Below, in pieces: positions 23,101 through 57,678 of a DNA stretch of 64,000 bases. The stretch spans positions 13,640,001 to 13,704,000 of the forward strand of contig OZ176050.1 in NCBI GenBank assembly GCA_964247055.1, read 5' to 3'. Each line of letters begins with the position of its first letter. The first letter of the stretch is position 1. Position numbers and translations under genes: made by a program. The stretch is from Paragordius varius. Its lineage: Eukaryota; Animalia; Nematomorpha. The notes under the pieces are model-generated. The model saw only the letters and a list, made by a program, of their open reading frames with translations. It did not search any database and had not been told where the DNA came from.

Positions 23101-25713
23101 AAAACAAGTGTAATATAATCTATGGGTGGAGCCATATCTGCATTGGTGCCCCCTCGAAGGGTTAAAGTTGATGTCACCAAACTTTGATTGCTGGAGTGTT
23201 TCAATTCACGGTCCCGTGAAGCGAAGAGTAAGCAAGGGAAAGCGATTTGAAGTAATAAGCAAACGCTTCTAATCAAGGGGGCAAAAAATTGATAAAAATA
23301 TATACGATCCACGTGAAATAATGTTTTTATATTCAAAAAATTGTGATTGATTAATATAAGTATATTTATATTTGAGTAACTTGTATAATTATTGATAGTA
23401 AAGTGTATTTCTTTTATTCCTTTAAGCCATATTTTATCGTAATAGATAGATATTCAAAGTCTATTAAACATTTTAAATATTGTATTAACATTTCGATTTC
23501 ACTCTTAAAATGAAATGTATCACACATAATTAGAAAGAAAGCTTGTTTTTAGATAATCCTACCAATTTTGTGGTGTTCCTTTTAAATATAGATATTTGAA
23601 TATAGCAGTGGTTTTTTATAATAATAATTACATTATATGATATCATTCTTTCGAGCGGTCATATCCGTAAATTATTTCGCCAGAGAACCCTGTATATGGC
23701 GTCCTCGCGTTTTAGGTTCAATTTTGCCATGTCCCTCTTAATTGTATCTATCCATCGCGTTTTAGGGCACCCTCTTCCCCTCTTATTTTTCACAAGATAA
23801 TCATCAATCTTTTTACCAATGTAATTATTATCAATTCTTTCAACATGTCCGAACCATCTTAAACAATTTATCATCATCTTTTGTGTTACCGGTTTGATTT
23901 CCCTACTTCCTCTTATGTAGACATTCCCACTTTGTCATTCCTCGTTACACCGCACATCAATCTAAGCATTCTCATTTGGATAACCTCAAAAGACCTCTCT
24001 TCTGATTTCTTTATTGTCCATTGTTGGCTGTACAACAGCACTGTAAATCTTACCCTTGACTTTTAGGCAATATTTTTATCGCACAAAACCCATTTTAGAT
24101 CTTTTTTATAATTTGCCCAACTATTTCAAATTTTTAGATTTATATCATGCGTTAAGGAACCATCTGCTGCTAAAATAGCTCCTATTATATATCTGCGCAT
24201 TTTGAAAGTATAACAAAAGAAGAAGTCCAGGCTGGTTTAGAAGACATGTCTATAAATCAGGTTGCAGTCCCAAACGATATTAAAATAAACTGAAAATAAT
24301 GTTAGAGAAAGGTATTTTTTGACGGATATTCTTATGGTTAGTATAGATATGATACCAATTAAATGGAAGGAGAGTACTGTTTCCAGTTTCAAGGTTAAAG
24401 GAGATATTAATGATTGTAATAATTACAAAGAGATAAAGGAGTTATTTGAGAAAGTACTAGAGAAACGAATGAGAAAAATGGTTAGTATAGAGGGTAAACA
24501 ATTTGGTTTTATTCCAGGAAAACCCACCATCGATTCGATTCAGGCAGTAAGAAGGTTGATTGAAAAGCAGATAAAAATGAAAAAAGAGTTGCATGGTATT
24601 TTAATCGATATTGAAAAGGCGTTTGACAGAATACCACGGAGTAGAATATGGTGGAGTTTAAGACAAAAAAACGTTGAAAGTTACAAAAAAATTTCAAAAA
24701 GCATGTACGATTGACACCATACCAAGGTTAAAACACACCAGGGAGTGTCAGATCCTATTCAAATAAACCAGGGCGTCTAACGGGGGTCAGCAATCAGTCC
24801 GTTACTATTTATAATATTCATAGACAAAATTTCAAAGTGAGGCAACATGGGGGCTACTATTTTCTTTATGCAGACGACCTTGCTGTCAGACGAGTTACAT
24901 GAATTGAAAGAATTGGTGGGTAAGTGGATTGATGTGTTACGACGATGCGGTTTAAAAGTTAATAAAAAGAAAACAAACTTATAAATTTCGGTGGTAATGA
25001 GAAAAGGAAATAGGAGAAGGGTGGTTAAAATGTCATGAAGAATGCAAATATTTAGGAGCGATTTTAGCAGCAGATGGTTCTTTAACGCATGATATAAATC
25101 TAAGAATTCGAATACAAGGTTCTTTTATCATCTAATTTATTTAAACAGAATAAAAATTATGAAATTTATGTTTATGGGTGAAATTAAAATTAATTATTAA
25201 TTTTAGGGTACTTTTTATAAAGGGCAATAAAATAATTAGTATGGATAAATTTGTTAAAAGACGCGGTTGTGGAGAAAATGAAGTTTATTTAATGATTTTC
25301 TTTATAAAAATTTAAATTATTTTTATTTTACTCCATATATAAATAAGAACATGTATTAATATTTAATACCCTGCAGTTTTAGCGTCTGCAACATAATCGG
25401 CAAATATCAATTTGTGAGGGGTAAAACTGACACATGTCGAACCCTCTTGTGATCCAACCAAACTTCCTTGAGTAATATTTTGCACCAAAAATATTCCATT
25501 AAGATGTTGCGATCTAAATATAAACGTTAATTCAAAATTTTTAAATACCTTAACCCAGGAATTTTTCTACCAGCTCTTATTTTAACTATCTTTACAGGCT
25601 TACATAATATCGCGGATAATGAAATAGCTGTTCGTAAAATTTGACCGCCCTTTATATTAGAAAATAATTTATACCCCTTCTTTGACAGAACCATCAATAA
25701 CGCACATGGCCAT
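20132..25713 (-). CDS. RTCA: RNA 3'-terminal phosphate cyclase, 9 exons, ~409 aa
   Basis: Exons (minus): 25713-25675, 25649-25549, 25513-25370, 23268-22824, 22391-22234, 21914-21856, 21541-21447, 20852-20745, 20212-20132 (1230 nt). Motifs: IDGSVKEG|[17 protein letters not shown]|SQHL, DAKTAG|[41 protein letters not shown]|LLLFMALA, and GPLTLHSES (adenylated His motif). Confidence 0.95.
21031..21307. mobile_element. MITE family B (TA|CAGTAAAAAT..ATTATACGGACAAAACG TIR), Tc1/mariner-like
   Basis: Inverted termini, mostly TA-flanked. Other copies: 1-38 (right end), 14652-14922, 16032-16276, ~16480-16740, ~35813-36082, ~36170-36385, ~51447-51715, 52009-52253, partial ~63360-63430. Confidence 0.75.
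23650..24215 (-). mobile_element. Decayed RTE-clade non-LTR retrotransposon, 3' fragment
   Basis: [15 protein letters not shown] and LRWFGHVER...[18 protein letters not shown]...LWR, typical of the RTE C-terminus. Confidence 0.85.
24290..25125 (+). mobile_element. Decayed RTE-clade non-LTR retrotransposon, RT core fragment (in RTCA intron 3)
   Basis: RT motifs [38 protein letters not shown] and YLGAIL, interrupted by stops and frameshifts. Confidence 0.85.
25514..25548 (-). other. 35-nt spliceosomal intron (RTCA intron 2)
   Basis: GTATTTAAAAATTTTGAATTAACGTTTATATTTAG. Removal restores PGLR-SQHL; retention hits an in-frame TAA. Confidence 0.9.
25650..25674 (-). other. 25-nt spliceosomal intron (RTCA intron 1)
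   Basis: GTATAAATTATTTTCTAATATAAAG. Removal restores the conserved EGGGQILR; retention gives GTA TAA. Confidence 0.9.
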
Positions 25714-26209
25714 TTGAAAAACCATATGTATAACTTTTATGCAATGCAAGTAAATTAATCGGTATGTCGCTTACCTTTTGTTGTTTATAGATTTTAACTC
25801 ATCGTATTGCTACCTATAAATCATTAATTAATTTGGGCGCCTTATATGGATTATTTACACAGTTGGCTTAACATATATATATATATATATATAGTATTTT
25901 ACGTTCCATTGAATATGTTTTTTAGAAGCCCTAGAGAATGATTCACGTCCTCCTGCCCTGAGGCGCGTAAAAGCGTAGGAAGGCGGTAAGGGTCGTCCTG
26001 TGCGGACAGTGGCGGTAAGCAAGCCTGTCACATCCTTTTCTGGATACCTGGATATTTATAATAACATTGCCTTGATTAAACATGTCCTATATATATATAC
26101 ATTATATATTGTAAAGTAATATGCTTAAAGTCGACAGAAAACCTAATACAAACGGGTGTCACTACATGTCTTCTGCGAACAGTAGCGGCGCGAGTCTGAT
26201 GCATTAGAC

Positions 26210-26456
26210 CAGGAGTGTCCAAAACAAATAATATCGCGGGCCAGATTTTGGATCCGGCAAAGCGGCATTTAAAATATATAGGCATTAACAAATATTTGAT
26301 TAGATTTTAGACCTAGGACTGTAAAAACCACTATTTGTTTAAACAATTTTTGCGTCATTGTTCGGAAATATTCATAAGAAATCCGTAAAATTTTTCATTT
26401 CAAATTTCGCCCGAGCTGCAGAAATATTTTCGATTGCCGCATGTTGGACACCACTG
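26210..26456. mobile_element. hAT-like MITE (family D)
   Basis: TIR CAGGAGTGTCCAA/TTGGACACCACTG with an 8-bp TSD CATTAGAC/CATTAGAT. Copy at 49242-49446 (TSD ATACAAAT/ATCCAAAC). Partial ends near 31660, 39580, 53720 and 61938. Confidence 0.8.
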
Positions 26457-27600
26457 CATTAGATTATTTTAAAGTGTAAAAAGTTATTTATTGCCTACTA
26501 AAGAGTTATTCTATTATACATATATTTAACACTTGGATACAACACATTCATTTTAGTCCCTCGATTCAAATTGAAATATGGAAGGATCGAAATGGCAAAA
26601 TTTTGAACTTATTAATTATTGGAATCCGGTGAAACCGCTAACAACTTTTTTGCCCATAAATGATAAATTTAAACCAGCATTAACTGAAAAACGACCGGGA
26701 TGAGCTTGAAAATATTAAGAACAATATTGTTACATGCGTCTCACACACCAGTAAAAGGCACCTTAATATCGCTTCCATTTTTTTCGGCATCTGAACCTAA
26801 CCCTACTTGGTGCCATCTGATTATTACCACTTCGTATCTATGCGGTACACACTGGTAAACAAGTAAACAACAAGTAAAGGGTGTAGCGTCGGAAGATCGT
26901 CGGCCACCTGCCGTCAAGGCAATCCCTACCCACCCGTAATGCATTGAGCTTCAGAGCGGGGAAACACATCGGAGGTTGGGTTTGACGTTAGTATCTACAT
27001 ACATAAATAAAATGCCTATGTTAGATGTGTTAATGGGAGTTAGTATAGTTAATGAGCTATATATATATATATTATATACATATATTTCAATAAATGTTAG
27101 CCTTGTTAAGTAGGTAAAAGCAATATTTGATTTTAAATAACCGTACAAACAGGGTTTGATTATTCCAGAAAGTAATGTCAAAGGTCTATGTCGGGTCAAA
27201 TGTAGTAATTTTAAGCTCTTATCTTTGGTGTAAAAGAGGATCTTCTTTTGCTTCTAAATGAGTATGGCCTTTTGGTAAACCAATTTTGAAGATATTAGAC
27301 ATTACAAGCGTCAACGTTACCCCTTCGTGCGACCATGTTTCAGTTGTACCTTCAACTGGGACGCTAACCCGGGATAAGTGGTCGTTGAGCTTGCTCTGAG
27401 CTAAGTCTCAAACTCCGACCAACAGAGATGTCGGAGATTGGTAACCAGCCCTGCTCAAATATCAGCGGCTCCAACATTGCTTCCCATGAATTTGTCTCAC
27501 AATAATTGGCTAATAGTCTACTCAGAGTCGCGTCTTGTTTTATACATTCAGTGGTACATTTTGTTCATGGGATATCTGTGGGAAGCAGTCTACATTCTTA

Positions 27601-27857
27601 ACTAACTGTATAGGTGTTTACCATTAACAGAGGTTGTTGTAAATATTGCATCAATACTAACTGACTTTAACAGAGCGTTGTAAAATAAAAATTTATACCT
27701 TAAATACATAAATACTAACTGACATTAACAGAGCGTTGTAAAATAAAAATTTATACCTTAATTACATCAAAACTAACTTACATTAACAGAGCGTTGTAAA
27801 ATAACCTTAATTACATAAATACAGACATTAACGTTGTAAAATAAAATTTATACCTTA
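27601..27857 (+). repeat. 58-bp minisatellite, ~4 degenerate copies
   Basis: Unit AATACTAACTGACATTAACAGAGCGTTGTAAAATAAAAATTTATACCTTAAATACATA starts at 27653, 27711 and 27769. Confidence 0.85.
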
Positions 27858-29889
27858 TCCAGCAGTGGGAATTAACCTTAAAATACTACCGACTTCGCAA
27901 TAGTACCATTCAATCTGGAGGAGCAAAGTATCCGGTTCAAAGAGAGTTGAATATTGGTAATCAGCCCTCAAATCAGCGGTTCCGATGTCATCGTCATATA
28001 GCAGGGAATTTGCGCTGGTTTCCAACGGGATAGGATTAGTAACTCCGGCGCGTTTCCTCGTTGAGCTTAAAAGTGATCGAGGTTTTCGGGGTATAATCGT
28101 AATCGCGTTCATCAGCGCAGCTTCAAAAGCTCAGTTGGCCACAGTTATTGAAGTTTTTTCGGTAAGTTTTAAAGATCGGAGTCATTAATTTACAGTCATT
28201 GTTCGATTCTAGCCTGGAGAGGATGTTGCGTCAGCCGGTGCCATACATCAAAAAAGTCGGTACACACTGGTATGGGTGCACTTCAATAATTTTAAAGACA
28301 TTGGAAAATGGCTAAACAAATGGTTTGCCGCAAAAGGTCATCCGTTTTTCTAGCATGCCATTTATATATTACCTGAGCCATATGCGAAATCTGTAGAAGC
28401 TGACGGACAATTTTAATTGAATATATGATTCCCTCCAAAGTTACGTAAGGAACAACATGAAAGGCTCAAGGACCACTTTCGAAGACCAACTAAAGTTTTT
28501 TGGTCGTACATCGAAGTGTGCATGGGATATATATTATAGATTTATTTTAATTATACAAAATTAAATGCTTTGTTTTAACACAATCGTTCTAAAAATTCAT
28601 TTGTATACAATTATTTTTTAATGCTTAAGAACAAAATTTAGCTGATGTGTTTTCTCCTATTGAATTACCTTTATTCGACCTAATGTTTCCGAAAATTCGA
28701 TAATTTTTGTAAAAAAATTAAATCTATATTATCTTAATCGCTTTTATCATCGCAAATTAAATTTAGAGCTGTGTAGATTTATAAAACTATTTTTTATATT
28801 TTGTAGCACAGAATTATAGGAACTTATTGCATCGTAATATCTAGCCATACATTTTTTTATAAAATAAAGCACATTTATTTTTGACTAAATATTTGGATTC
28901 AATTTTCCGAATTTAATTAAAAATTTGTTAAATTGGAATTAGAGGGAAGGGCTTTTAATTTAAAACTTTATAAATGACTATTTTCATGATAGTTATTATT
29001 AGAGCAAAATATTTTACATAATTGTTGCTTTTAGGTTTTTTTAGTTAAACTTTAGGATTTTTAAAGAGACCATTGAACAAAACGCCGTCTGATAAAAAAT
29101 TTAAATATACATTATATTATAAAGTAAATAATTATTTTGGAATTTAGATAAATTAATAAACCATATCTAATTTAGTTATTGTGTATTGCAATATATTATT
29201 TCCCATGATAAAATTTTTTCCAATTTAATTCAATGAGATTTGGAATATTTGATATTATTCAGCACCTGTTTTTAGTTTTATATATGTATGTTGTAAAAAA
29301 TAACTTTTTTTTGGTTATAAAAAAAATTGCTTAAAATGCTTAATAATAGGAAAAATTTTGCATTTTTATATGTAATTAATTTTTGGAATCGATATCTATC
29401 TATCTATGTTAATACGTAAATACAAACATCTCAAATATAGATTATTTTTTTTTCAAATCGATTTTTATTTTTGTATATCGCAAGCAAAAAATATCGTGTG
29501 TATTTCGTATGCTGTGTTCCATATTACCTAATTTGGTCTTAAATATTCTTTCCTTCGTATTTTTTAAAAAAATATATTTATTTATAATTTTAAGCTCTTT
29601 TGTATATTTTATTCGGATTTATCTCAGTTTTTTATTCAATACGTTAGTTTTTGCGTTAATCTTTGTTGTTTTATAATATATTGTTTTTTTGTAAAATCAA
29701 TAAAAATCCTAATTAATAGCTAATATAAAAAACCGGTTTTATATATCTCTATTTTTGTATCCCAAAATTACACATTTTTTTAATAAAATCTTCGACTTTG
29801 CTGAGCAAATTACTTAAATCCATCTTTTTTCTGAAATCTATATTCATAAATTTCAATTTTATCGGATTATATACATATATTATTAAATC

Positions 29890-32800
29890 ATGTCCAACAA
29901 AAATAAACGCAAAAACACTGTACCTCAAAAAATGGGAGGCTCTTCATTATTACCAATACCCATAGAAAGAGAAGTTTCAGACATGGATTTTATGTCACCA
30001 AATACGGATCTGATAAATTGTCAAAATGTTTACCAAAATAAAAATGAAGTCAAAAAAATTAATAAATTACTATCTAAATTTGAAGGTGAAAATATTAAAT
30101 CTACAATTCCACCACCGATGACTTGTAGCATTATGGAATCGTATTTGAAAATGATTCAAAAAGCTTGTGCCCAGTATAATTATACACTTTTTTTTCAATT
30201 AATTTATGGGGTGGTCTTGGTTGCTTTACTCGATTTCCTATTTTATAATGCGTTTGTTTAATAAAAAATTGTACCTTAGAATCGAAATTTATGTTAAAAT
30301 TAAGAGATATATAACTTTATAGTGAAAACTAACCTACCGCTCTGCATAGAGTACCGCCAATTTTAATTATGTTGATCTTTTGAAAAAGATTACTTATTTT
30401 TAATGGTAGTTTAACACAAAGTAGAATGACTTTTAAGATTTTAACGGAAAGTTACCGTTTAGTATTAAACATATTTTTATATTTTTGAAACTGTTTGATA
30501 AAAGTCGTAAGATATAACATAGTTTTCTGGTTAACAGGTAAAAAGTGAAACAAGTATTTAAAATTTTGTCTTAACGCATTTAATATGGCTTAGGTTCAGT
30601 ATTAAATTATGTATCCCTATCCCGTTTAACAAGCAAAAAAACACATAAATTTTATAGATTAGGGCAAAAATGGCTCTAAGAGTTTTGACAATATAAATGC
30701 GCTTTGCGGATTAACGTTTGTTAAATTTTATGTTTCTATAATATTTTAGATCAGAATTAGCAGAAAGAAACGATCCCAAAAATCATATATCGGATAAATA
30801 TCAAACTGGGAACAATAATGTTGAAGAAAAACAGCCGACTCCAAAGCTCACTTACAGAATTGATTCCGTTAGGAATAACGTTAGATTAAGGTCTCCGAAA
30901 TCCTCTTTTATGTTTTTTGATAACTTGCAGCGTACATGTGAATTCGCTCCAAACTGTCTACCCAGAGCTCATTTTCATTGCATTTGGGTACGTATATTTA
31001 AAATCTTAAACGTATTTTCAAACTTATGTGAATATGCGAAACAATAATTATTGAACATTTTACAGTATGGGCGAGTATACTTTGCTGGAAAGTTATTAAT
31101 TATTGCCAAATAATAAATACAACATAGGCATAATTATTGAGTTATAATAGTAAAAAGTCAAAAAAATATAAGCCAATAATACTGACCTTGTTGTATTTAC
31201 TATTTGCCAATACTAACTTTTTAGCTATGTATACTTACTCATTCTGTAATCTGAATTATTTATAACCATCATTATGTGTAAAACTTTAAATCCTTAATAA
31301 ATTTTTACATTTTTTCGATTATTTGATCTATAAGGTTATTTGGAAGTGAATGCATTGGAAAAAATTAAAAATGTCTGATATATACCATTGTTGTCATCTG
31401 CTAAAGATATCACGCGTCCCTTTAAAATATTTTGCAGCTCGGAAATTTCCATAGATATAAAATATAAAAATTTATAATAAAAATATGCCATTTACGAAAT
31501 TCAAGTGATTATTTCTTAAACGAACTTTTCGAATAAGTTTTTCCAAATTTCGAAGAAATGAACTAGAAATTGTAAAATAAATGCAAAATCTAATAAAAAG
31601 TATTTATTGATTCCTCTATATTTTTCAAATGTGCGGCCTGCAAAGCTATTTAGATAGATACCCCTGATATAAATAATTAGATTTTTATTAAAATGGCAAA
31701 TTTAAATATAGTAAAATTGGTGATTCTTAATATATAACAGAAATCTTCCGTTTATTGAGTTTAAAACATATTTTTTTTGTATACTATTTAGGTGAATTGT
31801 AACAAACCGTTGAGATACGAAGATGAACAAGCCTTGCTACAACATTATCGGCAACATAAAACTCAATTTTACAATTATCAAGAATCTCCGAACAACCTAA
31901 GCAATATAAAAAATTGTAACATATTGGAACCACCTAATATACCCATTAATAATCGGTTAAATAATATTACTTTTACCAATACTCAAATCGAACACCATCA
32001 AAATGAGGTTAATGATGATACTACATTGTCCACGAAGAATAAAATAACGTATGAAAAAATACCAATACATAGAATGTCTCCAGATTCAATGCATACTGAA
32101 CTTAAACGAAAACGTGGTCGACCACCCAAACATCGGTCTGAACTTTCAATTTTAACGGACACGGCGACACCATTGAGCGAAGAAAAAAGACAACCGGCGA
32201 CAGATTATATGATGATAGATGAGGAATTCGTTAATGCTACAATACTACAGAAATACATGCAAAATTTTGAATCACACCACAACACAATGGAAAACAAGGT
32301 TAATAATGGTAATGATGAAAAAGCAAAAATTAATTCAAATTCAGGTTTGGCTACTGGTGAAATGGGCAAGTTTTCTTCTAAATATGACAAAAATCATGCA
32401 TATCCATTTATACAACACACAAACGATGAAATTCAAAATATAAAAACTTGTAATAAAAATGATTCAGTTAAGTCCCCTCCTGTAGAAACGTCCAAAAACT
32501 CGGTTTATCATGACAGAACCGTAAATAATAAAAATCAAAAACCTAGGTATCAATCCGAATTCGAGTATTTGCTTCATCATACAAATAATTACCAAGCTCA
32601 AAAAACGCCTAAGATATCATCAAATCATTCATCCCAATTACATGCATTTAAGAAAAATAATGTTAATATGTCTGAAATTAATTCTATATCCACAAACACT
32701 GGTTATAAAACTATAACCATTGTTCCAGAATACCCTGGTCTAATGTTCTCATCGGATAATACAGTACCGAAATTCCCTGAATTCAAACGTAAAATAGTTT

Positions 32801-32919
32801 ACAATTTGGATAAAACGGCTTCTAAGCGTAAAAATGCCAAAAATCAGGATTACAAAAGTTTGTGTTTAACATTCATCCCAAATAAACGGGTCGGTCGTGC
32901 CAAAAAAGATGAAGAATAA
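29890..32919 (+). CDS. Nuclear protein with one Castor-type zinc finger and an AT-hook, 3 exons, ~549 aa
   Basis: Exons 29890-30173, 30750-30987, 31792-32919, phases consistent (1650 nt). The exon 2/3 junction builds FMFFDNLQRTCEFAPNCLPRAHFHCIW|VNCNKPLRYEDEQALLQHYRQH (C-x5-C-x4-HFHC-x4-C-x14-H-x3-H). AT-hook KRKRGRPPK; basic NLS-like ends. Confidence 0.7.
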
Positions 32920-33466: not shown

Positions 33467-36400
33467 TTAGATTCGAGGAGCAGTATTGCTAATAACATTA
33501 GTTAATCGAGGTTTATCGACGTACAATGGCCCATTAGTGTAGATTATGTATAAGGATATCAAGCATAACAAAAACCAGATTGAATAATATATCAATTGAT
33601 CTTTGTACGTTTCTAAAATTTTTTGAAAAAAGAAGGATTAATAATCAAAAAATGATTAAAATAACATTGAGTTTTACCTGAAGGCATAAGGTATGTAAAG
33701 AGCATCATAGCAAAACTTATGATAAACACAATAGGCATCCCAATATATTTCCAATCTCGATTTTCGGATTTAAAGGGTGAAACATAGGGGAATTCGTCAG
33801 AATTTTGTATGTGATATTTGCCCAAAAACAAATATAACGAATCCTGTAATATAACAAAAAAAGATATCATAATAGACTTGTTAAAAAAGCAAAGTCTGTC
33901 CATATTTTAAAAAATTAATCACACATAACAAATGTTAATTTAAATTTGTTAAATATGTGGTTTCTATATCATTTCTTTATAATCACTCATCCTAATTATA
34001 TTTAAAATCTTAGTGGTATAAAATAATTGGTAATAATAAAGATTTTATTACATATTCTTTGCCGCTTTTTGAATTTAACCGTAAAATTAATTAATTGGCT
34101 AAATTTTATTCGCAAAAAACATTTTTGCTTACTTGAGAAAATCCATCAACAAAATTATTTTTATAATATCTGAGCGCTGAATTTAAGCCATCTTGTATGA
34201 GACCCATGCGAGTGCGTTTTCCAGTTCTGACAAATTATAAGGTTTGTAAATAAATATAAAATTTTTACATTACAAATAAATCAAAATCTAAGTTGTCTCT
34301 TTAATGAACAATTTAAGATGATTGTACTTAACATAAATACCTATTAATCTCTTATTATTTTAATCAATAAAATTGATGCTTAATATTCTATCAGTAACTT
34401 TTAAACAAAGAATAAGCAATTATAATGCTAAAAATAATTGAAATATGTGGAAAACAATAAGCTAAGAAAAACAAATTTTAACATAATTTGCGCTTATTGA
34501 AATTAAAATGATAAGGGAAAACCTTGTAAAATCCGTTTTAAGAGCCGAGGAACCGGCATAATACCAAGAACATACATTAGCATTTTCAGTCCATTCTACA
34601 AAGCAACAATACAATTTATGATCAGAATTTATAAATATATAAAAATATATTTAATTGGAAATGGCCAAAATATATTGGAAAAACCATCAAGCTAAAAATT
34701 TATAATCAATTTTATTTGCAAGACAACAACCGAAGAATGTAAAATTTTTTTTACCATTCTTAAAGACTGTAAAAAGTTCCGTATATTGTGACATTTCACA
34801 TTCAGGTTTATCAGGCATGATCCCAAGATCCTAAAGAGAAAATGTTTAAGATAATTCCAATTAAAAATTTGACTTTTAACTTAAATTTTCTTATTAATTG
34901 ATACAGGATAGAGAATTTTTATATCATTGCCAACCTTTGATTGTGGAAAAATACATAATTTAAAAATAATAAACATTATTATTACATAATTGATTTATTC
35001 ACAGTCATTTTAAAAATTATTTAATAAACCAATAGATAACAAAATAACAATATTAATTATTTATTTTTTGCTTATATAAAGGAGCTAGATAGATTTAAAA
35101 GGAAGAAATTAATAGTATTATAACCAAGTTTAAATTTATGAATTTAACACCTTATTAGCAAATAAGAAAAGTGCATTAGAGTTATAATAAGCTAATAACT
35201 TAGGTACTAATTAAAAAAAGTTGATTAAATGTGATAATCTTCAAATTAATTTTCAAACAAATTTATTTTTTACAAAAAATACTTTGATAAAAAAAATTAA
35301 TATTCCTAAATGGAAAACAAACAAATTATAAACTTTAAGTTGTCTATCCAATACACGACGGCCCAACAAAGATTGTACTACGTTAGTTCGATCAAGGCAA
35401 TCCACGCAATTTATTCGGAACACGCCAGTTTGTAATACAACTTTATTCATAGCTGGGATTCGTAAGAAATATCTGTAATATGTAAATAAAGATATATTAT
35501 AAAACCTTATATGAAAATGTATAAAAAATATGCAGATATATAAAGTTTTCAAGAGTTAATACTTATTTACCATTAATGTAAAATAAAACATTTTGTCCTC
35601 TATTTAGCTTTAACCGTGATCATATTTTATTACTCAAAACTAGTATATTTTGTAATCATGATGTATGTGTGCTTAAATTAAAAAAAAATTAATATTAACA
35701 AAGGGAAAAACTATGGTTTTTTATATTGTGCCATTTTTGATACATTCATTTAACAAATATTCTTTTTTACACACAACTAGTTAATTCTGTGACCACCAAT
35801 ATTAGTTATCTGTGAGTAAAAATTGAAATTATACGGAAAAAAGGTAAAAAATAAAGACAATTTTTTTAAAAAGACAACTATAATTTTTTATACCTCAATC
35901 CTTATAAATTATATAATTACATTCGAAATATATCATTGAATGTGATGCCAATATAAATATCTATTATTTTATACTTTGCAGTTCAAAACAATGAGTTAGA
36001 TTTAAAAAACAAAGATATAAAAGGTAAATTGTCTTTTAGAAAAATATTTTTATGTTTGCCCGTATAATTTCAATTTTTACTTATTAAATTATATTATATT
36101 ATTTTTTAATTATATACCCCAATTCATTTTGGGCTTGTCTATAGTATCCATAAGTTTATCCAATTTACGTAAAAATATAAAGACAAAATTCTTTTAAAAA
36201 CAACCATAGTTTATACCTTACATTGGTATATATATTAATTGTGATACCAATATCCATCTCTATGTTATACTTTGCAGTTTAAAACAATGAGTTTTATTTT
36301 AAAAAAAAGATTCAAAAAAATATGGTTAGGTTTTAAAAAAATCTTTATAATTTTACGTTTGCCGGTATAATTTCAAATTTTCCTTATTAAATTATATTAT

Positions 36401-39400: not shown

Positions 39401-42400
39401 TAAATAATATTTCAAATACAAGAAATTAAAAAATGTTATATTAAGTTTGCATTTTGTAGTATATTATATTTGACATCTAAAGGTTTATATATATATGAAT
39501 GCCCATAAATGTATTTGAAATGCGACCCGCCATTTTTTAAGTTAATAATACGGCCAGCAAAGTCATTTTATTTTCCACCCCTGATATAAATTATAAAATA
39601 AAAATTAGAAAATAATCAATTTTGTAAAATTATACACCTATTCAAAAAATCGGTTAAGAAATAAATTTAATTAGATTTGCAATCAAGGGTCTCCTAACTC
39701 TCTATATTAATTTACGATCTAATCGTGTATATGTTATTCATAAACACGATTAGCAGCATTTTTATCACTTAAACGGGCGACCTTATATATATATATGATA
39801 ATCATATTTAATCTTATATAGTTGGGCAATTTGCAAGCATTACAGTAGTGTATGGAAAAAATGAAAGGAAAAGATTGTTTATTCAACACTTTTTTGTTTT
39901 TTCCATACACTGTTTTGCGAATTGTCCTACTATAGTGTGAAAAAAGCAACCATTAAAATGCACATATACCATTTACAGTTCAAATTCACCCTCGAACAAT
40001 TCAAATTCACCCTAAAAAACATATATGTGTTTTCGAACTAATATAACTGATTATTAACATGAAATATATCTTTATGGCATACTTTATTATTATTTCAGCA
40101 TTATTTTAATTTTAAACAAAATTTCATCTTTTAAAAATACATTAAAATATAGGTAATTTTTAATTTAAAAAAAAACACATTATTTTTTTAAGGGTAAATT
40201 TAAATTGTTCAAGGGTGAATTTGAATTGTAAATGGTATAGTATATAAATGTTTAAACAAAACCTCAATGTAAGATCCACAATTTTCCATACTTCGATCAG
40301 GTGTTGTCGGGGCGTTTTTATTAATTTCCAAAGAAGCGTTATTAAGGTTAGTTGGCATAAGTATAAATTGTTCCGTTTCTATATAATTAGCTGGGTGACC
40401 TTCCTCATCAATACCACGTGTGTAATATCTACACAATTATTTAAGCAATATAGTTTTAGAAATAAAAACGTGAATGTAAAACAAAATGTTTGAAAAGATA
40501 ACCATATTTTTTTGGTTTTTCTGGATAAAAACATCGTTGGTGCTTATGAAATGAGGATTGGAGATGGGAATAAACTATACACTTAAATATGGAATTAGGA
40601 GTTTTAATTATATTAAATTTAATTTAAGTGGTAAAATAATTTATATCATTCCTTATTTCACCTATAAACATTACACATTGAGGTTAAAAAATATGGTTTT
40701 TTATTGAATAAAAATTCTTTTGCTATATTATTCCGATTATATAATTAAGATTGGGTTAAAATCAGAGGGTTATGTTATTTCTATAATATGTATTTGTTAA
40801 AAAAGTAATTCAAGATTTATATGATGCTCTTACTTGGTCAAAGGGTATTTACGCAAAAATTAAAAATACGCAAATTTAAATTTGCCTATAATCTAATCAT
40901 ATAACTCAAGTTTTAATTAAATTTAAATTATTGAGAGCCAAAATTTAATTTATGAACGTAAAAAATCGTGATTGCGTTATGAAAAATTTAAAATATGCAT
41001 ATAACATATAAATTTTATACCATTTGCACTTCAAGAAAGTGAACACTTCAAATTAGTCCTTAAAGTTTTAGGTTTGGATTAAACCATAAATTTGTATAAA
41101 TATATTTTTTTTATTTTTGATTTATTATATATTTATTGATATACAAAAAATTTTCATTTGAAAATCACTTTTTTGAACTAATTTTTCCAATTCAACAATA
41201 TTATTCAATTACAATTGTTTTCAGTTAAAAATTGTAATCAATAACCCAGAACACTTGTATAGTTAATATTGTTATAAAAGTGGTTAAATCAAGAGAATAG
41301 GTTAAAAATGATATAAAAAAGAATGATACACGGTTTGATTGATAAATGTTAAAACAAATTAAAAAAAGGTGAAGGATCAACTTGAAATGTTTAAGGACCA
41401 AGTTGAAATGTCAAAGGACCAAGTTGAAATGTTCAAGGAAACTCCTAAAGTGCAAATGGTATATTAAAAGTATATTTGAAAATTTAACCTTAAATTAAAA
41501 AAAACCATTAAAATTCTGCCGCATTTTATTCAAGAAGGTTTATTTATATTTTTCTTAAATATTTTACATTTTTTGTTTAATTCCCATATTATTACTTACA
41601 ATATAAGTAAGTCTCCCATTTATAATTATAAACTCTAAAGCAAAATATTGAAAAAAAAATGTTTTTAGGTTAAAACTAACCTTACACCCGGGTTATGAAT
41701 ACTTCGTCGTGAAATGATTCCCAGCGTTATTTCATGATTTTGTGGAACCGTTGGAGTATTCGTAAGTCTATTTTGTGTGGAATTTTGTTGAGAATTTTCA
41801 TTAGTGGTATTTATGTTAGTATTATTTGTGTTGGGGGTAGACGTCAATTTAAGTGGTACAAATATTTTAGTTAATGATATAAAACCACACATTATAGGAA
41901 CTTTGTATGGATCAAGCTATAAAAATGGATAAAATTAACTTTTATTGCAACTTTTTAGAAACTACAGTGTAAAAATAGTATAAATAAATTAGTTTGAAAA
42001 AAGATTAACTGTAAAGATATCAACTTACTTCAGGATTTCCCAAAAATTCTTGCATTAGGTATTGATTCCAAACAAACCGTTTTTCAGCCTATAAAAATAT
42101 ACCATTTATAGCTCGAATTTATCCTCAATTCCAATTCACCCTAAAATAAATTATGTGATGTTTTCGGACATTAAAAACTACCCATATTATATTTTTATAC
42201 ATGTTTGAAAAACAAAATTTCGCATAATAATAATATAATACTAAAAATAATAATACTATGCCATAATGAACAAATAATTCATATTAATATTAATGATGAT
42301 AAGTTACATTAGCCCGAAAACACACATAATTTATATTTAGGACAAATATGAATTTTTCAAGGGTAACGTTGAGCGTGTAAAGAATGGTATATGTATATCT

Positions 42401-44131
42401 TTATTTACAATTTAAATTCACTTTTTAACAATTCAAATTTAAATTCACCCGAACAATTTAAATTCAAATTCACCCTCGAACAATTCAAATTCACCATTAA
42501 ATAAATTATATGTTTTTTTAGAATAAAATTTACTTATATTTTTATATATTTTTTAAATTATATTGAAAAATAAACTATGCCATAAAGAGATATATTTCAT
42601 ATTAATAATGAACTATATTAGTTCGAAAACACATAAGTTATCTTTTGGGCAAAAATAAATTGTTCAAGGGTGAATTTGAAATGTAAATGGTATATATAAA
42701 AATTGATTTCATATATATTAAAAAACGGAAAAACCCGATCAAAAATGGATTGCTGGACAAAATTAGGCTGTTGCCCAATTTGATGCAGGCTTTGTAAATT
42801 GTGTGTTAAATCATACGAGGTGGCAAAATAAAAACGACCCAAGGTAAGAACATGATTAAGCATGGACACATAAATTTTGTTATCTTGAAGCTAAAAATTC
42901 ATATGAGGGTAAAAATTCATGAGAAGTTGTATATAAAAATATTATAGCTTCAAAATAAAATATTTAGTTCCTTAAGTTTAAGCCTCTCATCAAACCGATC
43001 AATAATTTGGGTTATGATTTGGATAGATATGTAAATTGCTAACATATTCAATTATTGACTTAAAATAGGAAAAAATATGAATTAAAATGATTTTTAGCAA
43101 AAAAATCTTTATTTTTTACATACATAATTCCAATTTTGAAGCTAGAAAACGTGAAAATAAAAGTGCAATCAGATATTACTTTCAAGCGGATTGCCATAAA
43201 GAAGTAGCTTCGAATCCATTGTTTTAAAATGGTTTTGATTTTATTATATATTATATTAATAAACAAAATATTTAAAAATTAATTTTATTGTTGATCTATT
43301 TCGCCGAAAAACTATAATATGCTTATACATGTCGAACACAGGTGACAACAGTATATAATAAGGTTAACATACAAGATAAAAACGGCTATTCGGTTAAAAT
43401 GGTTATGGTTTAATCCCTATTAAAATCATCAACTACGACTCAAAATTGGAAAACAAAAATTAAAATTTTAAAAGTAGAATTTTAAAATGAATTTTAAACG
43501 TAATACATTTAACCAAGGAATTATAATTAATAATATGATATATAAGCTGCATTTTTTTTAGTTGTCAAAAATCGGTTGATATTTGGTTAAAAAACAATAA
43601 CTGCACATTAGCATGGCTTTTACAAAATTTAAAAGCCAAATTTTTGAAGTTATCGAAAAAAAGGTTGAAATTTTCATAAATGTATCCCTCTTAATAATTC
43701 AATATTGGCCCTAATTTATAATAATACTTTTGGTTCCGAAAGATGAAAGTAACTTTTGCAATAGGGTATAATATTGAATGTTTCGGCTTGCCAAATCATG
43801 TGTCCAGAGATTTCACCAATGTATTTTCTTGAAGCAATCACAATCAAATAATTTCCTAATTGTTGTTAAAATTAAATATTAAACCAGCTAAAAGTTTGAT
43901 TGTCCCAATTATTCCATATATCTTTAAGGAGCGCTCAAAAGCAGTAGGGATCTGTTTTGGACCTTAAATTTAATTTTTATAAACCTTTAACCACATTTAT
44001 TTCGTTTGATACTCTATCAATAACCAATGTTTCATGGTTGTTTTCCAAGGGATCAATAATAAATTCTTTATTAGTTATATATCTAAATATTAGAAAAATA
44101 TTTACAAAATTAATTCCTGATATAGCGTCAT
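33467..44131 (-). CDS. SACM1L: Phosphatidylinositol-4-phosphate phosphatase SAC1, 18 exons, ~658 aa
   Basis: Exons (minus): 44131-44106, 44082-43985, 43962-43885, 43855-43728, 42890-42735, 42088-42029, 41916-41681, 40428-40263, 38834-38748, 38256-38188, 37446-37367, 36531-36433, 35472-35334, 34830-34755, 34595-34523, 34226-34133, 33843-33678, 33612-33467 (1977 nt). Motifs: [20 protein letters not shown]|[56 protein letters not shown], catalytic CX5[27 protein letters not shown]|TGKR, and two C-terminal TM helices. Confidence 0.95.
39969..40235. mobile_element. MITE family A, clean copy in SAC1 intron 8
   Basis: TATA CCATTTACAGTTCAAATTCACCCTCGAACAATTCAAATTCACCC ... GGGTGAATTTGAATTGTAAATGG TATA. 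Confidence 0.8.
41020..41459. mobile_element. MITE family F (TA|CCATTTGCAC...GTGCAAATGG|TA, 21-bp AAGGACCAAGTTGAAATGTTC repeats)
   Basis: Inverted termini and subterminal 21-mers. A related copy lacking clear termini lies at ~60270-60790. Confidence 0.7.
43856..43884 (-). other. 29-nt spliceosomal intron (SAC1 intron 3)
   Basis: GTTTAATATTTAATTTTAACAACAATTAG. Removal restores the conserved LLAG-NYLIVI; retention ends in an in-frame TAG. Confidence 0.9.
43963..43984 (-). other. 22-nt spliceosomal intron (SAC1 intron 2)
   Basis: GTTTATAAAAATTAAATTTAAG. Removal restores NVVKG-PKQIP; retention gives GGT TTA TAA. Confidence 0.8.
44083..44105 (-). other. 23-nt spliceosomal intron (SAC1 intron 1)
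   Basis: GTAAATATTTTTCTAATATTTAG. Removal restores ELIL-YITNKEF; retention gives TTG TAA. Confidence 0.85.
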
Positions 44132-44669
44132 AAGGGTTGTATTTAAAATTAATAACGCATATGGTGTATTTATAATTTTTTCATTTGAGAATAACGCAAA
44201 AATTTATTATTTTTATACCATAAATCTAATCTTATAGCTAATTTAAAGTTTATTATTTGGATCATATTATGCATAAATTTAAATATTTTAAATTATTGTT
44301 TATGTCGTCGTATTTGCTTAATTATTTTTTATTTTTTATTTTATTATATATTTGGATTATGTGATCAGGAGCTTAAATTTTTTAAAAAATATTGTTTTAG
44401 TAAAATTTGCCTAGATATATTTTTTATATGGCGAGGTGATTTAAGATATATTTTTAACTTTTGAGGATTTAAAAAATGGCTAAATTTGCGCTCATTTATT
44501 ATATAAATTTTTTATAAAATGCAAGCTTAGATGTGAGATCTATGAATCCCAAATTATTTTGCTCTTCTAATAAAGAATGCCGAGATTTGGCGATAAAAAT
44601 TTTAAATATATGCTAAATTTTGATATCAAATAATTTTTTTTTAAAAAATATACCACTACAAACATATAA

Positions 44670-45823
44670 CCTGATGAAATATATATATATATATATATAT
44701 TCTGATTGAAAAATGTATCAGGATTATAATGGTGCTTTCGGTGATGTCCATACGAGTGATTTAAATTTACGCTTTTGTAACTCCTCCATATCAGAAAATG
44801 AAATTTGCGCAGATTATGTTTAAATAAATTTAAAGAAAGCTAAAGGCCTCATTCCATAGAATATCATTAAAATATATTAAAAAGTGCATAAGCAAAACAA
44901 TATTTTCAAAAAAAGTTAATTTTTAAATGCGGGCCCCAAAAGTCTCAAATTTTGTTCTTCTAAAATCAGCTACTCTAAAAATAATGGGGGGATAGCGTGA
45001 TAAAAATTTTAAATATCCTGATTTTTATATCAACTAATTAAATATTTTTACTTTTTTCAAAAAATTTATTTTTAGCAATTTATTGAAGCGTACTTTATAA
45101 TTTGAGGCATGATGGAAACGGTATAAAAGCGTTAAATATTAAACACTTTTTCTAAATACTTCGATGATGATGAACGTTTCTACCGCTTCAGTTAATTAAA
45201 AGTTCGTATGATTAAAGATTTGGCGTAATGTAAAAATACTCATTACCATAAATTTGAAGTTAAACGAAGAAAGCTTTAATCGGGTAGAAAAGCTGTGATC
45301 GAACTGTTAGGAAGAAGTATTATTATAATAATTAAAGCTATATAAAACCGTTTCCATCTTGATTTAAAATACAATAAAGTTGGCTCAACAGAATTTTCTA
45401 AAAATTAAATTTTAAAATCATACATTTGTTAGATATTTTTAGTTGATGTCGAAAATTAGGAATATTAAAAATTTTTATCGCGAATATCCCCGCATTTTTG
45501 CGTTTATTCTAAGAGTAGCTTATTTTGAAAGAGCAAAAAAAATTAGACTTTTGGAGCCCACATCTCAAAATTAAAATTTTGGAAATATTGTTTTTATGCA
45601 TTTTTTGATATATTTTTTAGATATTTTTTGAAATTAAGTCTTTGCCTTTTACCAGCAAAAAATTTTATTTAAAAAGGCGCAATTTTTGCCATTATCTAAT
45701 ATAAACACTTACCACAAAAATATAAATATCTTGATCACTCGTAAAAGTAAAAATTAAATGCACCATGATAAATATAATTTTCTATCAGAAAAATATATAT
45801 ATATATATATATATTTCATCAGG
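44670..45823. mobile_element. Foldback-like element with ~400-bp inverted arms
   Basis: Termini CCTGATGAAAT(AT)n / (AT)nTTTCATCAGG; 44866-45040 is an inverted match to 45431-45620. Related fragments at ~44430-44650 and ~59690-60240. Confidence 0.7.
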
Positions 45824-46884
45824 ATGTTTTTTAACCCTTGATTCGCAGTGTATATAGTATTCAAAGTAAATACTTTAGATGAATTTTACTATTTCTCAAT
45901 TCAAATAATTCCAATATAAACGGAATACTTTTTTATTCATCATAAGGCCCCAAACAATGCACTATAAGAATCCTGATATATATTTATCTGCCATATATCT
46001 TTTTGGCAGGATATTTCCAGGTTTTAGGACTGTATCTGATACGAACAAAGCGTACGTATTTAAAGTAAGCTTGCTATAAAGGGTCTACTGCACTTATTTT
46101 ACAAATTCGATAAACTTATATTGAACCTCAAAACTTTTAAATATTATTCGTTCATTAATTTAAAAAAATCGTGCTTCTATTAAAAGTAATCTAAAACGAT
46201 ATTTGATAAATATAAAATAGCTAATAAATGTTCGGTAAAATTATGTGTCAAAAGTATTAATTTTTATAAAGCTTAGCATGTTTCGTAAAACATGCTTTCC
46301 TTAACACAATATTTAGGTAAATACCCATTTGGACTCTAAATTATAGCCTGCTCAATGGAGAACAAGTTTGGTACAACACTCTAATCCCGATGGCTTAGCC
46401 AGTCCTATTAGTTATATTTAATTTATAGCATAGTCTCTATTGAAAATAATTTATTTCAATAGCATATCAGGCATTATCTTCTGACCAATCTCAACTAACA
46501 TTTGAATCCCAGCATATACGGGTTTAAAATAGATGTTCAAACTCAAAAAAACGAACTTAATAACTACAATTTGATGTATGTGGAAATTATATCTCCATAT
46601 GGAGAAATTATTATGGAACAATTTTTAAGAATATTTTTCCCAGGCCCGTAGGCTGCGGTTTAAATACCACTGATCTAAAGGGTGGTCAGAGTAATATTTT
46701 AACTAATCCTCACCCTTCCAATGATTTAATCCATTAAAAAAATAATTTATTTTAAAGGCATAGAATATTCTAATTATCATCATTATAAATATGAATCCAA
46801 TAATATAATAATATATGAATTATTCAGCAATATAGAACTTGGTGTAATATTGTAAATATTATTAAATGCAAACATATGCAATAA

Positions 46885-48303
46885 TCACCAATTTAACAAT
46901 TGCTTGGTGAGGGACGCTTTTGTAGTTGTCGCACTAGTTCCACTGAGTTTAGCCTCAAAAACTCGGTTCCACCATTCCTCAAAATCTTTGTTGTACTGAT
47001 CCACTTTCTTCTTGTATTCAGCTTTGTAATCGGCATAAGCTTTCTTAATCGTAGCCTTTTCGGCCTCGATATGTTTCTTGATTTCGGCTTTCTTATCGCT
47101 CCATCGTTTTTTCAAATCATTCTTGGCGTCTTGGAAAGCTTTTTTCTTAGCATCAACCTTAGTTTTTATCTTAGTTTTGATAGCTGTATGCTTTTCACCC
47201 AATTTCTTTTTTATGGCAGCTTTTTTTGCCTTAAGCTTTTTAACGATTTCTTCGTGGTGTTTACTCTTGTACACAAGTTTTTTAGCTTTTTTGTGATTAT
47301 GATGAGAAGAATGTGTAGTACTATAACTTGTTGTGGTTACATGTCGATTCGTAGAATACTCAGACTTTTTGTACACCACGGGAGCCGGATAATTATACTG
47401 AGGACGATAGTTATAATCACTTTTGGGCGCGTATCTTTGACGCTTTTCAATACTGTGTTGTTCAGATGTGGTGTCGTCTTTGAGATCCGTATTATCGGTT
47501 TCATCCAAGTAATTTTCTAAAGCTTTTTCCATATAAATATTATTGTTGTCACTTCTTTTCTTTCTTGATGCATGGCCACGAGCCCCAAGTGGAATTAATC
47601 GACGCCGACCAAAAAAGATGTTATCATCATTAATCTCTTCAGAACTTGTGCCAAAAAGTAAATCATCAGTATCTACATGACTGGTTTCATCCAAATTTTC
47701 TGAAGCGTTTTGTTCAAATTGACCCTCATCGGCTAATGGATTGGATGAGTCTACAATACTCCTTTTCTTAAGGCCGCGACTATCATCACTATTAGTCTGC
47801 AAATTAGTTTGTGATAACCATGGTGTCGCACATTCGCATAACACTAAAATCTAACACAATTTATAGAAATTAATATTTTTTTAATGAATCCATTAACACT
47901 TCGATTTAAATTGGGGTAAATATCCCAGACTAAATGTGAGTTAAGATTTTTAAAAAACTACTGAAGAAAACGGTTTTAATTTAAATTTATGCTTCTATCC
48001 TAATAAAAATTACATAAATATGCCAAAATATCCAAATTAAATTTTGTTTTGAAAAAAAAAGTTCCATGTCAAACTACTTCGACGCCATTTTTATTTTACA
48101 AAGTTTTTGCAAAATAGCGTCTTCCCTGGGGTGTTTAACTACCCCAATTTGAATCGAAAGACTAAAATGAATGTATTGTATCCAAGTGTTAATAGTATAA
48201 AACTTAGTTTGAGAAAAATCAATATATAGAGTTTTATCAACAAATTACGACATTTTACCCAACATAAGGATATGAATAAGTAAATTGATTTTTTAGATCC
48301 CAT
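46885..48303 (-). CDS. Orphan secreted preproprotein (signal peptide, acidic pro-segments with basic cleavage sites, Lys-rich 11-mer amphipathic repeats), 2 exons, ~336 aa
   Basis: Exon 1 48303-48259 (MGSKKSIYLFISLCW, donor GTAAAA) joins in phase 0 to exon 2 47850-46885 (ILVLCECA|TPW...), giving a typical signal peptide. The long open frame contains KKR, GRRR, RKKR and EKR sites. Confidence 0.75.
47897..48188. mobile_element. piggyBac-like MITE (TTAA|CACTT...AAGTG|TTAA)
   Basis: TTAA on both flanks and an internal inverted CGATTCAAATTGGGGTA repeat. A longer copy is at 8946-9511 and an inverted end at 26530-26575. Confidence 0.75.
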
Positions 48304-48980
48304 CTTCCACTCCAACAAGGGATAAATGACTAAATATTTATTATTTTAATAAATTTGAAGATTTTATATAATTTTATCTAAAACAAATTTTTAAAAAAAA
48401 ATTTTTTTAGACATGACCAAAATTATTTAGGCCAAAAACATTTATAAATGATGTCTTCAAGCATAATATAAAAATATTATGCAATATATTATAGTTTTAT
48501 AAAAAAAAGTTTTGTAAATGTACCGTATGCAGGTCAAGATTAAAATCAATGGTATATATTTTAAATATATTATTTTTTTATCATTATTTATGTTTTTATT
48601 TAAAAATATTTTTTCATTAAACATTGGTAACAAAAGTGTTTTTCTTTGTTCCAATATGTATATTATGGCAAAAATTATGATATAGAATGTTTAAAAAAGT
48701 AAAAGTCACTTTTAAATGTAAAAAGGACAAAACCTTTAATATAATAAAAAATATATAATAATGAAAATCAAATGAAATTATGATAGAAAGTTCATGTTTT
48801 TGGCTGATATTTCTCTAGTTATTGAAATCAGAATTTCAATAACCTTGAAATATAATATGCTTTTCTTTTTAACTTTATGGTAAAAATATTAATAAAAAAA
48901 ACTTTTTTTGTATTGAACAACCATTTCTTTATTAATTTAAGACATGTATAGATTTCCAACATTTTTGATATGATCATGCC

Positions 48981-51900
48981 ATGATAAAGCAAAATATTGA
49001 TAGTTTTACCTCTTTATTCCGATTAAATTTGGATTTCCTTAGCACAAAAGAAAGATTTTCAAAGTACTGTAAATTTTTACCTTTTAATCCGATACTACCC
49101 AATTATATTTTATTATTGATGGGTTGTTGCGTATTCAGTGCTCCTTTGTGTGATGCAGATGAACCAAATATTGCGGACAATTTACCTTCAATGGAAATAC
49201 ATGGTAGGTTTTATTCATATATTAAAATATGGCATACAAATTAGGGGTGTCCGACACAAATGGCTTTGTGGTTAGATTTTAAATATAAAACTGTTAAATT
49301 ACTGTTTATTTAAACAATTTTTGCTCGTTTATTGCCAAATGACTGAAAATTTGTTTAAGAAAATCATTTTTCCACCAAGATTTTATGAGAATTATTGCAA
49401 CTTACAGAATTTCAATTTTTTGCGGGCCGCGTGTCGGACACCCATGATCCAAACCACAAAAAATAATGTTTTAACATTTTTGGTAAACCCGTAAATTAAA
49501 CTTGGTATGTTTAAATAATTAGTTTATGAGTTTAGTGTTTTTACAGTTTTATTTTGGCTATTACATGCAATAGATGTTCAATGTCATTCAAATTTCATGC
49601 GCGGTTTATTGGTAACAAATGGACCACTGAAAGACACTCAAATCCTAATTAACGATAACGATTATTTTGGTATAAATGTACCCATCACATTTCAACATGC
49701 ATATACCTCTAAACATAACTATCACGGTGAAGGTATATATTAATATATTATATAATCAGATCTGACACCAAAAACTTTAAACAAAAATTCTGCTGCAACA
49801 GCCACTAATGAAATTGAACATTTTTGTAAAATTGTTGAAATACAACCTGGAGATATGGTATATTTATTAATAATTAATTCACATAATATTATCTTACGAA
49901 ACTATTTATGAGAAAATAGCCATACAAATACTTTTCTAATTTTTATAATCACATATAATTCTTACACGTATAAATTTATAGTATTTTATCATTTATAATT
50001 TAAAATTATAAAACATGTGGATTAACCACTTCATGTTTAGATACACACCATTTAGGATTATCTTTAATGCCAACTATTTCTTAAGATTATTATTGTTTAG
50101 TTTTGCCCGGCTTATACATTAAAATTTAATATGTTAAAATCCAGATATGTTTTAAAAATATATTTTTTCGTTAATATTAAAAAGAAACAGCTTTCTTTAT
50201 ATTAAATGAAAATGGTGATTTGAGCATATATATTACATAATTCATATTGTTATAACAAGATATTTCGTTAACTAATAATTTTTACAACGCCAAATACGGT
50301 TAAATAAATTATTTTATATTACAAAATTCTTTAAACTTTTACAAAATATATGGATTCAAATTAATTATACGGATTAAGGAGAAAGTATTTTTATGATATT
50401 TAAAAGTGTAATACCAGAGATGATAAAAATATATTATATGCATACGTTTTTCTCTACATTCATAAATATATGTAGTGATTATTAGACATTTTAAATTTTT
50501 CGATCTATTAAATTAATTTCGGCCCCTGTGTTTCCAGTTTATATTGGCTTGTTTAAAATGATTTTGTTTTTTTCTAAAAACCAACAAAAAATTAATTATA
50601 TTTATAAACAAAAAAGATGAAATAAAAAATTGCCATATTCAGTTCGTGTATGTCCGACTTTAATGTGTAATCGCCACCGTTAACTATACATTTTATTTAT
50701 ATAATGTTATATATATAGGTAGAAACCGCAGTCTTAAGGGATCGATTTAGGCTCACTCGAATTTTTCTGTTTGAATTGGATTTCTATCATTGCGGTACAA
50801 TGCTAAATTCTGCACTACAATATTTGCGCTCCGTTAATTTTGCGAACAATAGCGATTTCCAACCCGATACATTGATTGTTACCAACATATTTCATCAAAA
50901 ATATTTCAAAGGAGGCATAGAAATCGCCAAAAATTCAATTCAACATGCCCAATGTGAAATCTTTTTAAACCCTACAGTAGAAAACGAAAACGATAAAATG
51001 TAGATTAAATTTTTCTATAAAAATTGACATTAGTTGATTTAAAAGAATTATTTTATATGTCATTAATGTAAATTTTTACATAATTATAGATATTACTGGA
51101 TAGAAGTAGAGCAATCCAAATACATTGGATCAATCGAAAGACTTTTCATGAAAAATGCATTATCACAAGAGTCTGTCTACTTGAACGGTGAAGAAATTAT
51201 ATTCAAAATTAATTCTAACAAAGGTAAATTAGATATCAAATAACAACATCTATTTTTTCAAAAAACGTATTTGAGCTTTTGATTTTAGTTACAGATTTAA
51301 TTTATTGTCGTGTTCCGATTTCTCACAATTTTTATTTTTGCAAAAATACTTTAGGTTCTCCATTATATTGTTGTTAAAAAGTGGTTATTTTATTTAAAAA
51401 TTTTCAGCACCAGTTTATTTTGGAAAACAGTAAGAATTAAAATTATATACTGAAAAAAGGGTAGAAATATAAGGACAAATATTTTTTTTTCAAAAGACAA
51501 CCATATCACTTAATATAAAATTGATTGTTTTTGTAATATATCACTATCTCACACTTTTCCATTTAAAACAATGAATTTATATTTATAAAAAGATGTATAA
51601 GTATGGTTGTTTTTTTTAAAAAATGTCTACGTTTTGTCCGTACAATTTCAATATATATAACATAAGAAAATATCACATAAATTTTTTTTGAATACCGACA
51701 ATATCTTTCATTTGAAATATAGTACGAACAAAGAAAGGCTATCATATGTAGAATTAATTAAAAAACAAAAAATTATAAAATAAACTTTTCAAAAACTTGT
51801 GAAAACCGCCGTAACCACAAAAAGGGTTTTTTTCAATCCCTGCAAGTTAACAATCATTATTTTATATTTGATGTTTTAGCTGAACCTGTGTATACTATCG

Positions 51901-52609: not shown

Positions 52610-52641
<32 letters not shown>

Positions 52642-57643: not shown

Positions 57644-57678
<35 letters not shown>

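Follow-up and report, generated by a model that had tools for sequence, protein, structure and literature searches.

A survey published in 2026 and covering 51 animal genomes found introns shorter than 30 nucleotides (nt) only in the Myxobolidae and in Dicyema japonicum (PMC13644364). The median intron length in the Myxobolidae is 22-27 nt, with support from Iso-Seq, and introns are similarly short in Dicyema; both groups are tiny parasites whose genomes are compact (∼20-200 Mb) and relatively poor in transposons, short introns are their norm, and the trait has been tied to genome reduction (PMC13644364). A second animal system is formed by the microintrons of flatworms, known from Opisthorchis felineus, Clonorchis, Schistosoma, Echinococcus and Macrostomum; in O. 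felineus the microintrons peak at 37 bp and account for 34% of introns, a further length peak lying at 90 bp, and intron definition at the 5' end has already been suggested for them (PMC6530080). Among unicellular organisms, introns of ∼25 nt in Paramecium and of 15-16 nt in Stentor are cited in PMC13644364 and PMC5014332. Here we describe six very probable introns of 22-35 nt, referred to below as micro-introns, in three genes of the horsehair worm Paragordius varius (Nematomorpha). All lie in a single 64,000-nt stretch of contig OZ176050.1 (assembly GCA_964247055.1, forward-strand positions 13,640,001 to 13,704,000), which we call the window and in whose coordinates all positions are given.

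The three genes, each with its intron lengths in order, were modeled as follows.

20132-25713, minus strand: RTCA (RNA 3'-terminal phosphate cyclase), 9 exons, 409 residues, reading frame intact, based on tblastn with RTCA homologues and an exact model; introns of 25, 35, 2101, 432, 319, 314, 594 and 532 nt.
33467-44131, minus strand: SAC1/SACM1L phosphoinositide phosphatase, 18 exons, 658 residues, 17 GT-AG introns, exact model; introns 1-9 of 23, 22, 29, 837, 646, 112, 1252, 1428 and 491 nt, and introns 10-17 of 741, 835, 960, 503, 159, 296, 289 and 65 nt.
49119-53134, plus strand: a third gene (gene 3), 9 exons, 471 residues, a C-terminal membrane helix, reading frame intact; introns of 343, 27, 861, 90, 656, 338, 206 and 79 nt.

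When the 33 introns are pooled, their lengths run 22, 23, 25, 27, 29 and 35 nt, and then 65, 79, 90, 112, 159 and so on to 2101 nt. No intron falls between 35 and 65 nt, which in this small sample separates a short class (22-35 nt) from a long one (65-2101 nt). Only 6 of the 33 introns belong to the short class, so the bulk of the introns in these genes are not tiny. The two classes also differ in composition, since the micro-introns have a GC content of 12% overall (9-14% each), compared with 23% for the long introns and 34-39% for exons. The members of the short class are the following.

44083-44105, minus strand: SAC1 intron 1, 23 nt, phase 2, GC 13%.
43963-43984, minus strand: SAC1 intron 2, 22 nt, phase 1, GC 9%.
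43856-43884, minus strand: SAC1 intron 3, 29 nt, phase 1, GC 14%.
25650-25674, minus strand: RTCA intron 1, 25 nt, phase 0, GC 12%, with an in-frame TAA when retained.
25514-25548, minus strand: RTCA intron 2, 35 nt, phase 2, GC 14%.
49733-49759, plus strand: gene 3 intron 2 (probable), 27 nt, phase 1, GC 11%, bypassing an in-frame TAA and keeping the frame into exon 3.

Five of the six (22-29 nt) are shorter than 30 nt, and the remaining one is 35 nt. All six are bounded by GT at the 5' end and AG at the 3' end, and their excision restores the reading frame in all three genes. A first-pass annotation, made from the sequence of the window, had reported six GT-AG introns of exactly these lengths in three genes; when their coordinates were fixed again by script, all were correct, and the in-frame stop that it had described in each segment when read through was seen in the sequence. 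It had given the next smallest introns as 65, 79, 90 and 115 nt, of which the first three stand while the fourth is actually 112 nt, and it had placed the upper end of the range at ∼2.9 kb, which is too high for these three genes, where the longest intron is 2101 nt.

Reading frame by itself does not single out such introns. A scan of the window for micro-introns by frame alone returned 403 candidates, compared with ∼251 in shuffled sequence, and was not discriminating. Because a scan of this kind is unspecific in DNA so AT-rich, the case for the micro-introns stands on homology and on exact orthology of intron positions. The best additional candidates from the scan, at 15356-15392 and 17242-17276 in a neurexin gene, were rejected; the sequence downstream of one looks non-coding, and the other has a tandem array of miniature inverted-repeat transposable elements (MITEs) upstream.

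When SAC1 exon 5 was used in a profile-free search, the clearly closest protein proved to be the RefSeq model XP_065315026 of another horsehair worm, Gordionus sp. m RMFG-2023, with an identity of 62.7% (compared with 46% to the bat protein), whose exons were mapped exactly on a 33-kb Gordionus locus. All 17 SAC1 introns occupy the identical alignment column, in the same phase, as introns of the Gordionus gene, and the micro-introns of 23, 22 and 29 nt correspond in position and phase to Gordionus introns 1-3, which are 43, 6808 and 318 nt long. The correspondence extends to the bat Myotis davidii, which shares 14 of the 17 positions exactly and a further two to within one alignment column; here the three micro-introns match introns of 6511, 2655 and 1878 nt, the first and third exactly and the second one column off in equal phase. 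The small exons flanked by the SAC1 micro-introns are kept at the protein level, with stretches such as ILYITNKEF and LLAGNYLIVI shared with Gordionus, and since these exons are conserved as protein they must be translated, which requires that the segments between them be removed.

A similar picture was obtained for RTCA, for which the sponge Amphimedon shares six of the eight intron positions and phases. The 25-nt intron lies in the column and phase of a 54-nt Amphimedon intron, and its excision joins '...IDGSVKEG' to 'GGQILR...', giving a gapless match to sponge RTCA. Homologues also align without gaps across the 35-nt intron (homologue residues 16-48 and 48-97). The RTCA of Gordionus was found neither in the protein collection, over the length range searched, nor within 10 kb of Gordionus SAC1, and RTCA intron positions were therefore compared with the sponge only; the Gordionus gene may have been lost, lie beyond the reach of the search, or be unannotated. 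The comparison with SACM1L and RTCA orthologs that the first-pass annotation had suggested thus came out at 17/17 positions with Gordionus and 14/17 with bat for SAC1, and 6/8 with sponge for RTCA. Comparative evidence is strong for five of the six micro-introns. We conclude that the six segments are very probably genuine, constitutively removed GT-AG spliceosomal introns, and that they would be old introns whose length in this lineage is just 22-35 nt.

The sixth, gene 3 intron 2, is supported by reading-frame continuity and by composition. Retrieval of homologues for this gene came up empty, and a Pfam search of its product gave only a weak, sub-threshold match to ZP-C, in exon 7 (E = 0.016), so that gene 3 is possibly a ZP-domain protein. 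It is at this intron that an alternative with other boundaries is most concrete, in which some of the six segments would belong to introns that are longer or alternative, or would flank small exons that are skipped, and the true minimum length would be larger. With the donor unchanged, the next AG in gene 3 lies 42 nt further on, and its use would give a 69-nt intron that likewise keeps the frame and drops 14 residues (DLTPKTLNKNSAAT). The 42 nt between the two candidate AGs are, however, exon-like in GC content (33%, compared with 11% in the 27-nt segment). For SAC1 and RTCA, homologues align residue for residue at each junction, with none missing or extra, and any shift in the boundaries would remove conserved residues or break the frame. 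We consider it improbable that some of the six introns have other boundaries.

Still less probable is that the segments are never spliced, being either insertions introduced by sequencing or assembly or the marks of pseudogene copies broken by small insertions. Indel errors are possible in AT-rich long-read assemblies, and RNA support is absent from the data that we obtained. In five DNA runs representing three samples and two studies, however, the 31-mers sampled over the SAC1 micro-introns were recovered at 89-100%, and short-read contigs of other samples match the segments of SAC1 and gene 3 exactly, those of run X3 being identical to the window at 43800-44143 and 49420-49787. Because DNA runs and contigs carry them, the segments of these two genes are not assembly errors, and the concern, raised in the first-pass annotation, that the segments might be assembly artefacts is answered by DNA of other samples for the stretch covered, from SAC1 to gene 3. 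Broken pseudogenes are equally hard to reconcile with segments of 22-35 nt that have exact GT...AG ends at orthologous positions and phases, in genes whose other exons and 27 other splice sites are all intact and whose proteins are well conserved. Removal at the level of DNA, with the segments cut from somatic DNA as short internal eliminated sequences in the manner of ciliates, can practically be dismissed: the 22-35 nt size and AT-richness recall Paramecium eliminated sequences, and DNA elimination occurs in some nematodes, but the segments are bounded by GT...AG rather than TA...TA and sit where other animals have ordinary introns, and among the joints listed no DNA contig of run X3 skips the segments.

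Several observations weigh against the conclusion that all six segments are spliceosomal introns with the properties described here. The 35-nt RTCA intron is not at the position of a sponge intron, the nearest one lying 9 residues downstream, and the 27-nt intron of gene 3 is without homologue support and has the 69-nt in-frame alternative. Searches of sequencing runs matched only DNA-like ones, and in three RNA-labelled runs (X7-X9) under this species label nothing from 43800-49790 was found at a likeness of 85% or better; these runs possibly come from another species, and mislabelling has been documented in one horsehair-worm genus, Chordodes. The protein collection contained no transcript-derived protein from Paragordius varius or a closer species. 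The 5' bias of the short class, for which an exact within-gene rank test gave P = 2.6e-5, was tested post hoc and on 33 introns only. Finally, a motif resembling a branch site in the micro-introns cannot be told statistically from chance, such motifs being expected in ∼40% of windows so AT-rich. In addition, the spliced junction between SAC1 exons 2 and 3 was not found in Joint Genome Institute (JGI) metagenome contigs.

The motif in question takes two forms. In the first introns of both SAC1 and RTCA, CTAAT precedes the AG by 7 nt, and TTAAC does so by 10 nt in SAC1 intron 3 and by 13 nt in RTCA intron 2; in these four of the six micro-introns, the motifs contain most of the few C residues present. 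They are candidates for the branch site, but are suggestive only. The remaining signals are also minimal. The 5' splice signal consists of GT plus A or T only and is alike in short and long introns, and there is almost no polypyrimidine tract in the micro-introns. A U12-type identity was rejected, since no 5' consensus of that type is matched, and an Rfam search of the window for small nuclear RNA (snRNA) genes returned no RNA family. These features are consistent with ordinary U2-type splicing, in which each micro-intron would be recognized by intron definition over a unit that is very short, extremely rich in AT and minimal in its signals, and closeness to the cap or promoter might aid recognition. 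The small target that such introns offer to MITE insertion might, as the first-pass annotation proposed, keep the length distribution bimodal.

The micro-introns are confined to the beginnings of their genes, ranking 1-3 of 17 in SAC1, 1-2 of 8 in RTCA, and second of 8 in gene 3, and they are neighbors wherever a gene has more than one. Measured along the coding sequence, they are offset by 26, 124 and 202 nt in SAC1, 39 and 140 nt in RTCA, and 271 nt in gene 3, placing all of them within the first 271 nt. The first-pass annotation had located all six among the first three introns of their genes, and both these ranks and the rank test given above bear this out. It had also described their coexistence with long, repeat-bearing introns, and this too holds, since the micro-introns share transcripts with introns of 65-2101 nt, and 11 of the 27 long introns carry repeats that recur at other places in the window (coverage up to 97%). 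Because micro-introns and introns of 65-2101 nt sit in common transcripts, one spliceosome has to process both size classes.

The window has a GC content of 22-36% and MITE-like repeats, in line with the published Gordionus genome (26.9% GC, 64% repeats, mostly DNA transposons). Many of its long introns contain a MITE-like family made of tandem 'GGTGAATTTGAATTGTTCGAG' units ending in 'AAATGGTATA', with up to 21 copies in the window; the 'GGTGAATTTGAATTGTTCGAG' family is found at 42100-42700, 40000-40250, 36560-37060, 17080-17240 and other sites, and yields long spurious open frames. RTCA intron 3, the 2.1-kb intron that follows the two micro-introns, is filled in large part by a degraded reverse-transcriptase remnant of a non-long-terminal-repeat (non-LTR) element, that is, a long interspersed nuclear element (LINE), at 23600-24900 on the minus strand. 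Two further repeats were noted. A very high-copy repeat occupies 47800-48200, in the intron or 5' region of the orphan secreted-protein gene, and has a word depth in run X3 of up to ∼27,000-fold, compared with 2-7 in unique sequence. At 55176-57700, long arrays of a ∼33-nt repeat have open frames in several phases and on both strands ('HFFKQTQ' and 'LEKMLRL' frames), and look like a minisatellite rather than a gene.

Two other observations concern SAC1 and its surroundings. The RefSeq isoform X2 of Gordionus SAC1 lacks 15 residues that are present in X1 and conserved in the Paragordius varius protein, which suggests either that an alternative donor is used where exon 4 ends or that the annotation varies there. 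Tail-to-tail with SAC1 lies a poorly conserved gene (29887-32919, plus strand) whose product combines a KNKRKN motif at the N terminus with the AT-hook-like KRKRGRPPK and, at the C terminus, a conserved 'KRKN.KNQ.YKSLCLTFIP'. Its orthologue is equally placed beside Gordionus SAC1 (Gordionus locus L004, 44820-50550), and SAC1 microsynteny is therefore conserved between the two worms.

The extreme shortness of these introns occurs in a repeat-rich genome that also has long introns, and so shortness is not merely a by-product of compaction. A single transcript with introns at the 22-nt and ∼2-kb scales demands both of one spliceosome and, taken with the flatworms, the 5'-clustered layout becomes a recurrent phenomenon that can be tested. 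Introns of this size also defeat the default settings of aligners and gene finders, which bears on how well horsehair-worm genomes are annotated and on claims that genes have been lost from them; the Gordionus genome paper gives a BUSCO completeness of 71.6%. A broader proposal, which we put forward tentatively and consider rather doubtful as a whole, is that horsehair worms would add a third lineage, independent of dicyemids and myxobolids, to the animals with introns below 30 nt, and would differ from those two in keeping such introns only near the cap, beside kilobase-sized introns that bear transposons. This might imply cap-proximal intron definition convergent with that of flatworms, and part of the loss of universal genes and low BUSCO scores reported in Nematomorpha might then be an annotation artefact, arising from gene finders unable to model such introns.

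How the micro-introns compare with described systems can be seen first within the Nematomorpha. Intron 1 of Gordionus SAC1 (43 nt) has the orthologous position and phase, lies at the 5' end of the gene and is very AT-rich, but it exceeds the 30-nt limit, and the next two Gordionus introns are 6808 and 318 nt where those of Paragordius varius are 22 and 29 nt. Our literature search found no paper tying Nematomorpha to short introns, and the word "intron" does not occur in the Gordionus genome paper. The first-pass annotation had regarded tiny introns as known mainly from uniformly compact genomes, a view that has to be revised, since flatworm microintrons show an equal layout (PMC6530080) and myxobolids also have introns below 30 nt (PMC13644364). 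As described in PMC13644364, the introns of myxobolids and Dicyema resemble those reported here in being animal GT-AG introns of 20-30 nt at conserved positions, with a 5' signal of approximately GTa, a few A residues before the AG as a possible branch site, and a polypyrimidine tract that is missing or very short. They differ from the tiny introns described here, which form a minority at the 5' ends of genes in a genome that is rich in repeats and has other introns reaching kilobases. The ciliate and nucleomorph introns show that a U2-type spliceosome can excise introns of 15-30 nt, but these lineages are unicellular and have tiny introns almost throughout, lacking both a coexisting long class and the 5' clustering of the arrangement here. 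Flatworm microintrons are closest in layout, forming a separate short class beside introns of ∼3 kb, clustered and with a preference for the 5' ends of genes, with a weak or absent polypyrimidine tract, and being missed by gene finders at default settings (PMC6530080). They peak at ∼37 bp, whereas five of the six introns described here are 22-29 nt and one is 35 nt, in a nematomorph (Ecdysozoa) rather than in Platyhelminthes, and they are supported by RNA, while the introns described here are known from genome sequence alone. The micro-introns of Paragordius varius extend kinds of intron already described to a new lineage and to shorter lengths, in a 5'-clustered, bimodal layout already known from flatworms.

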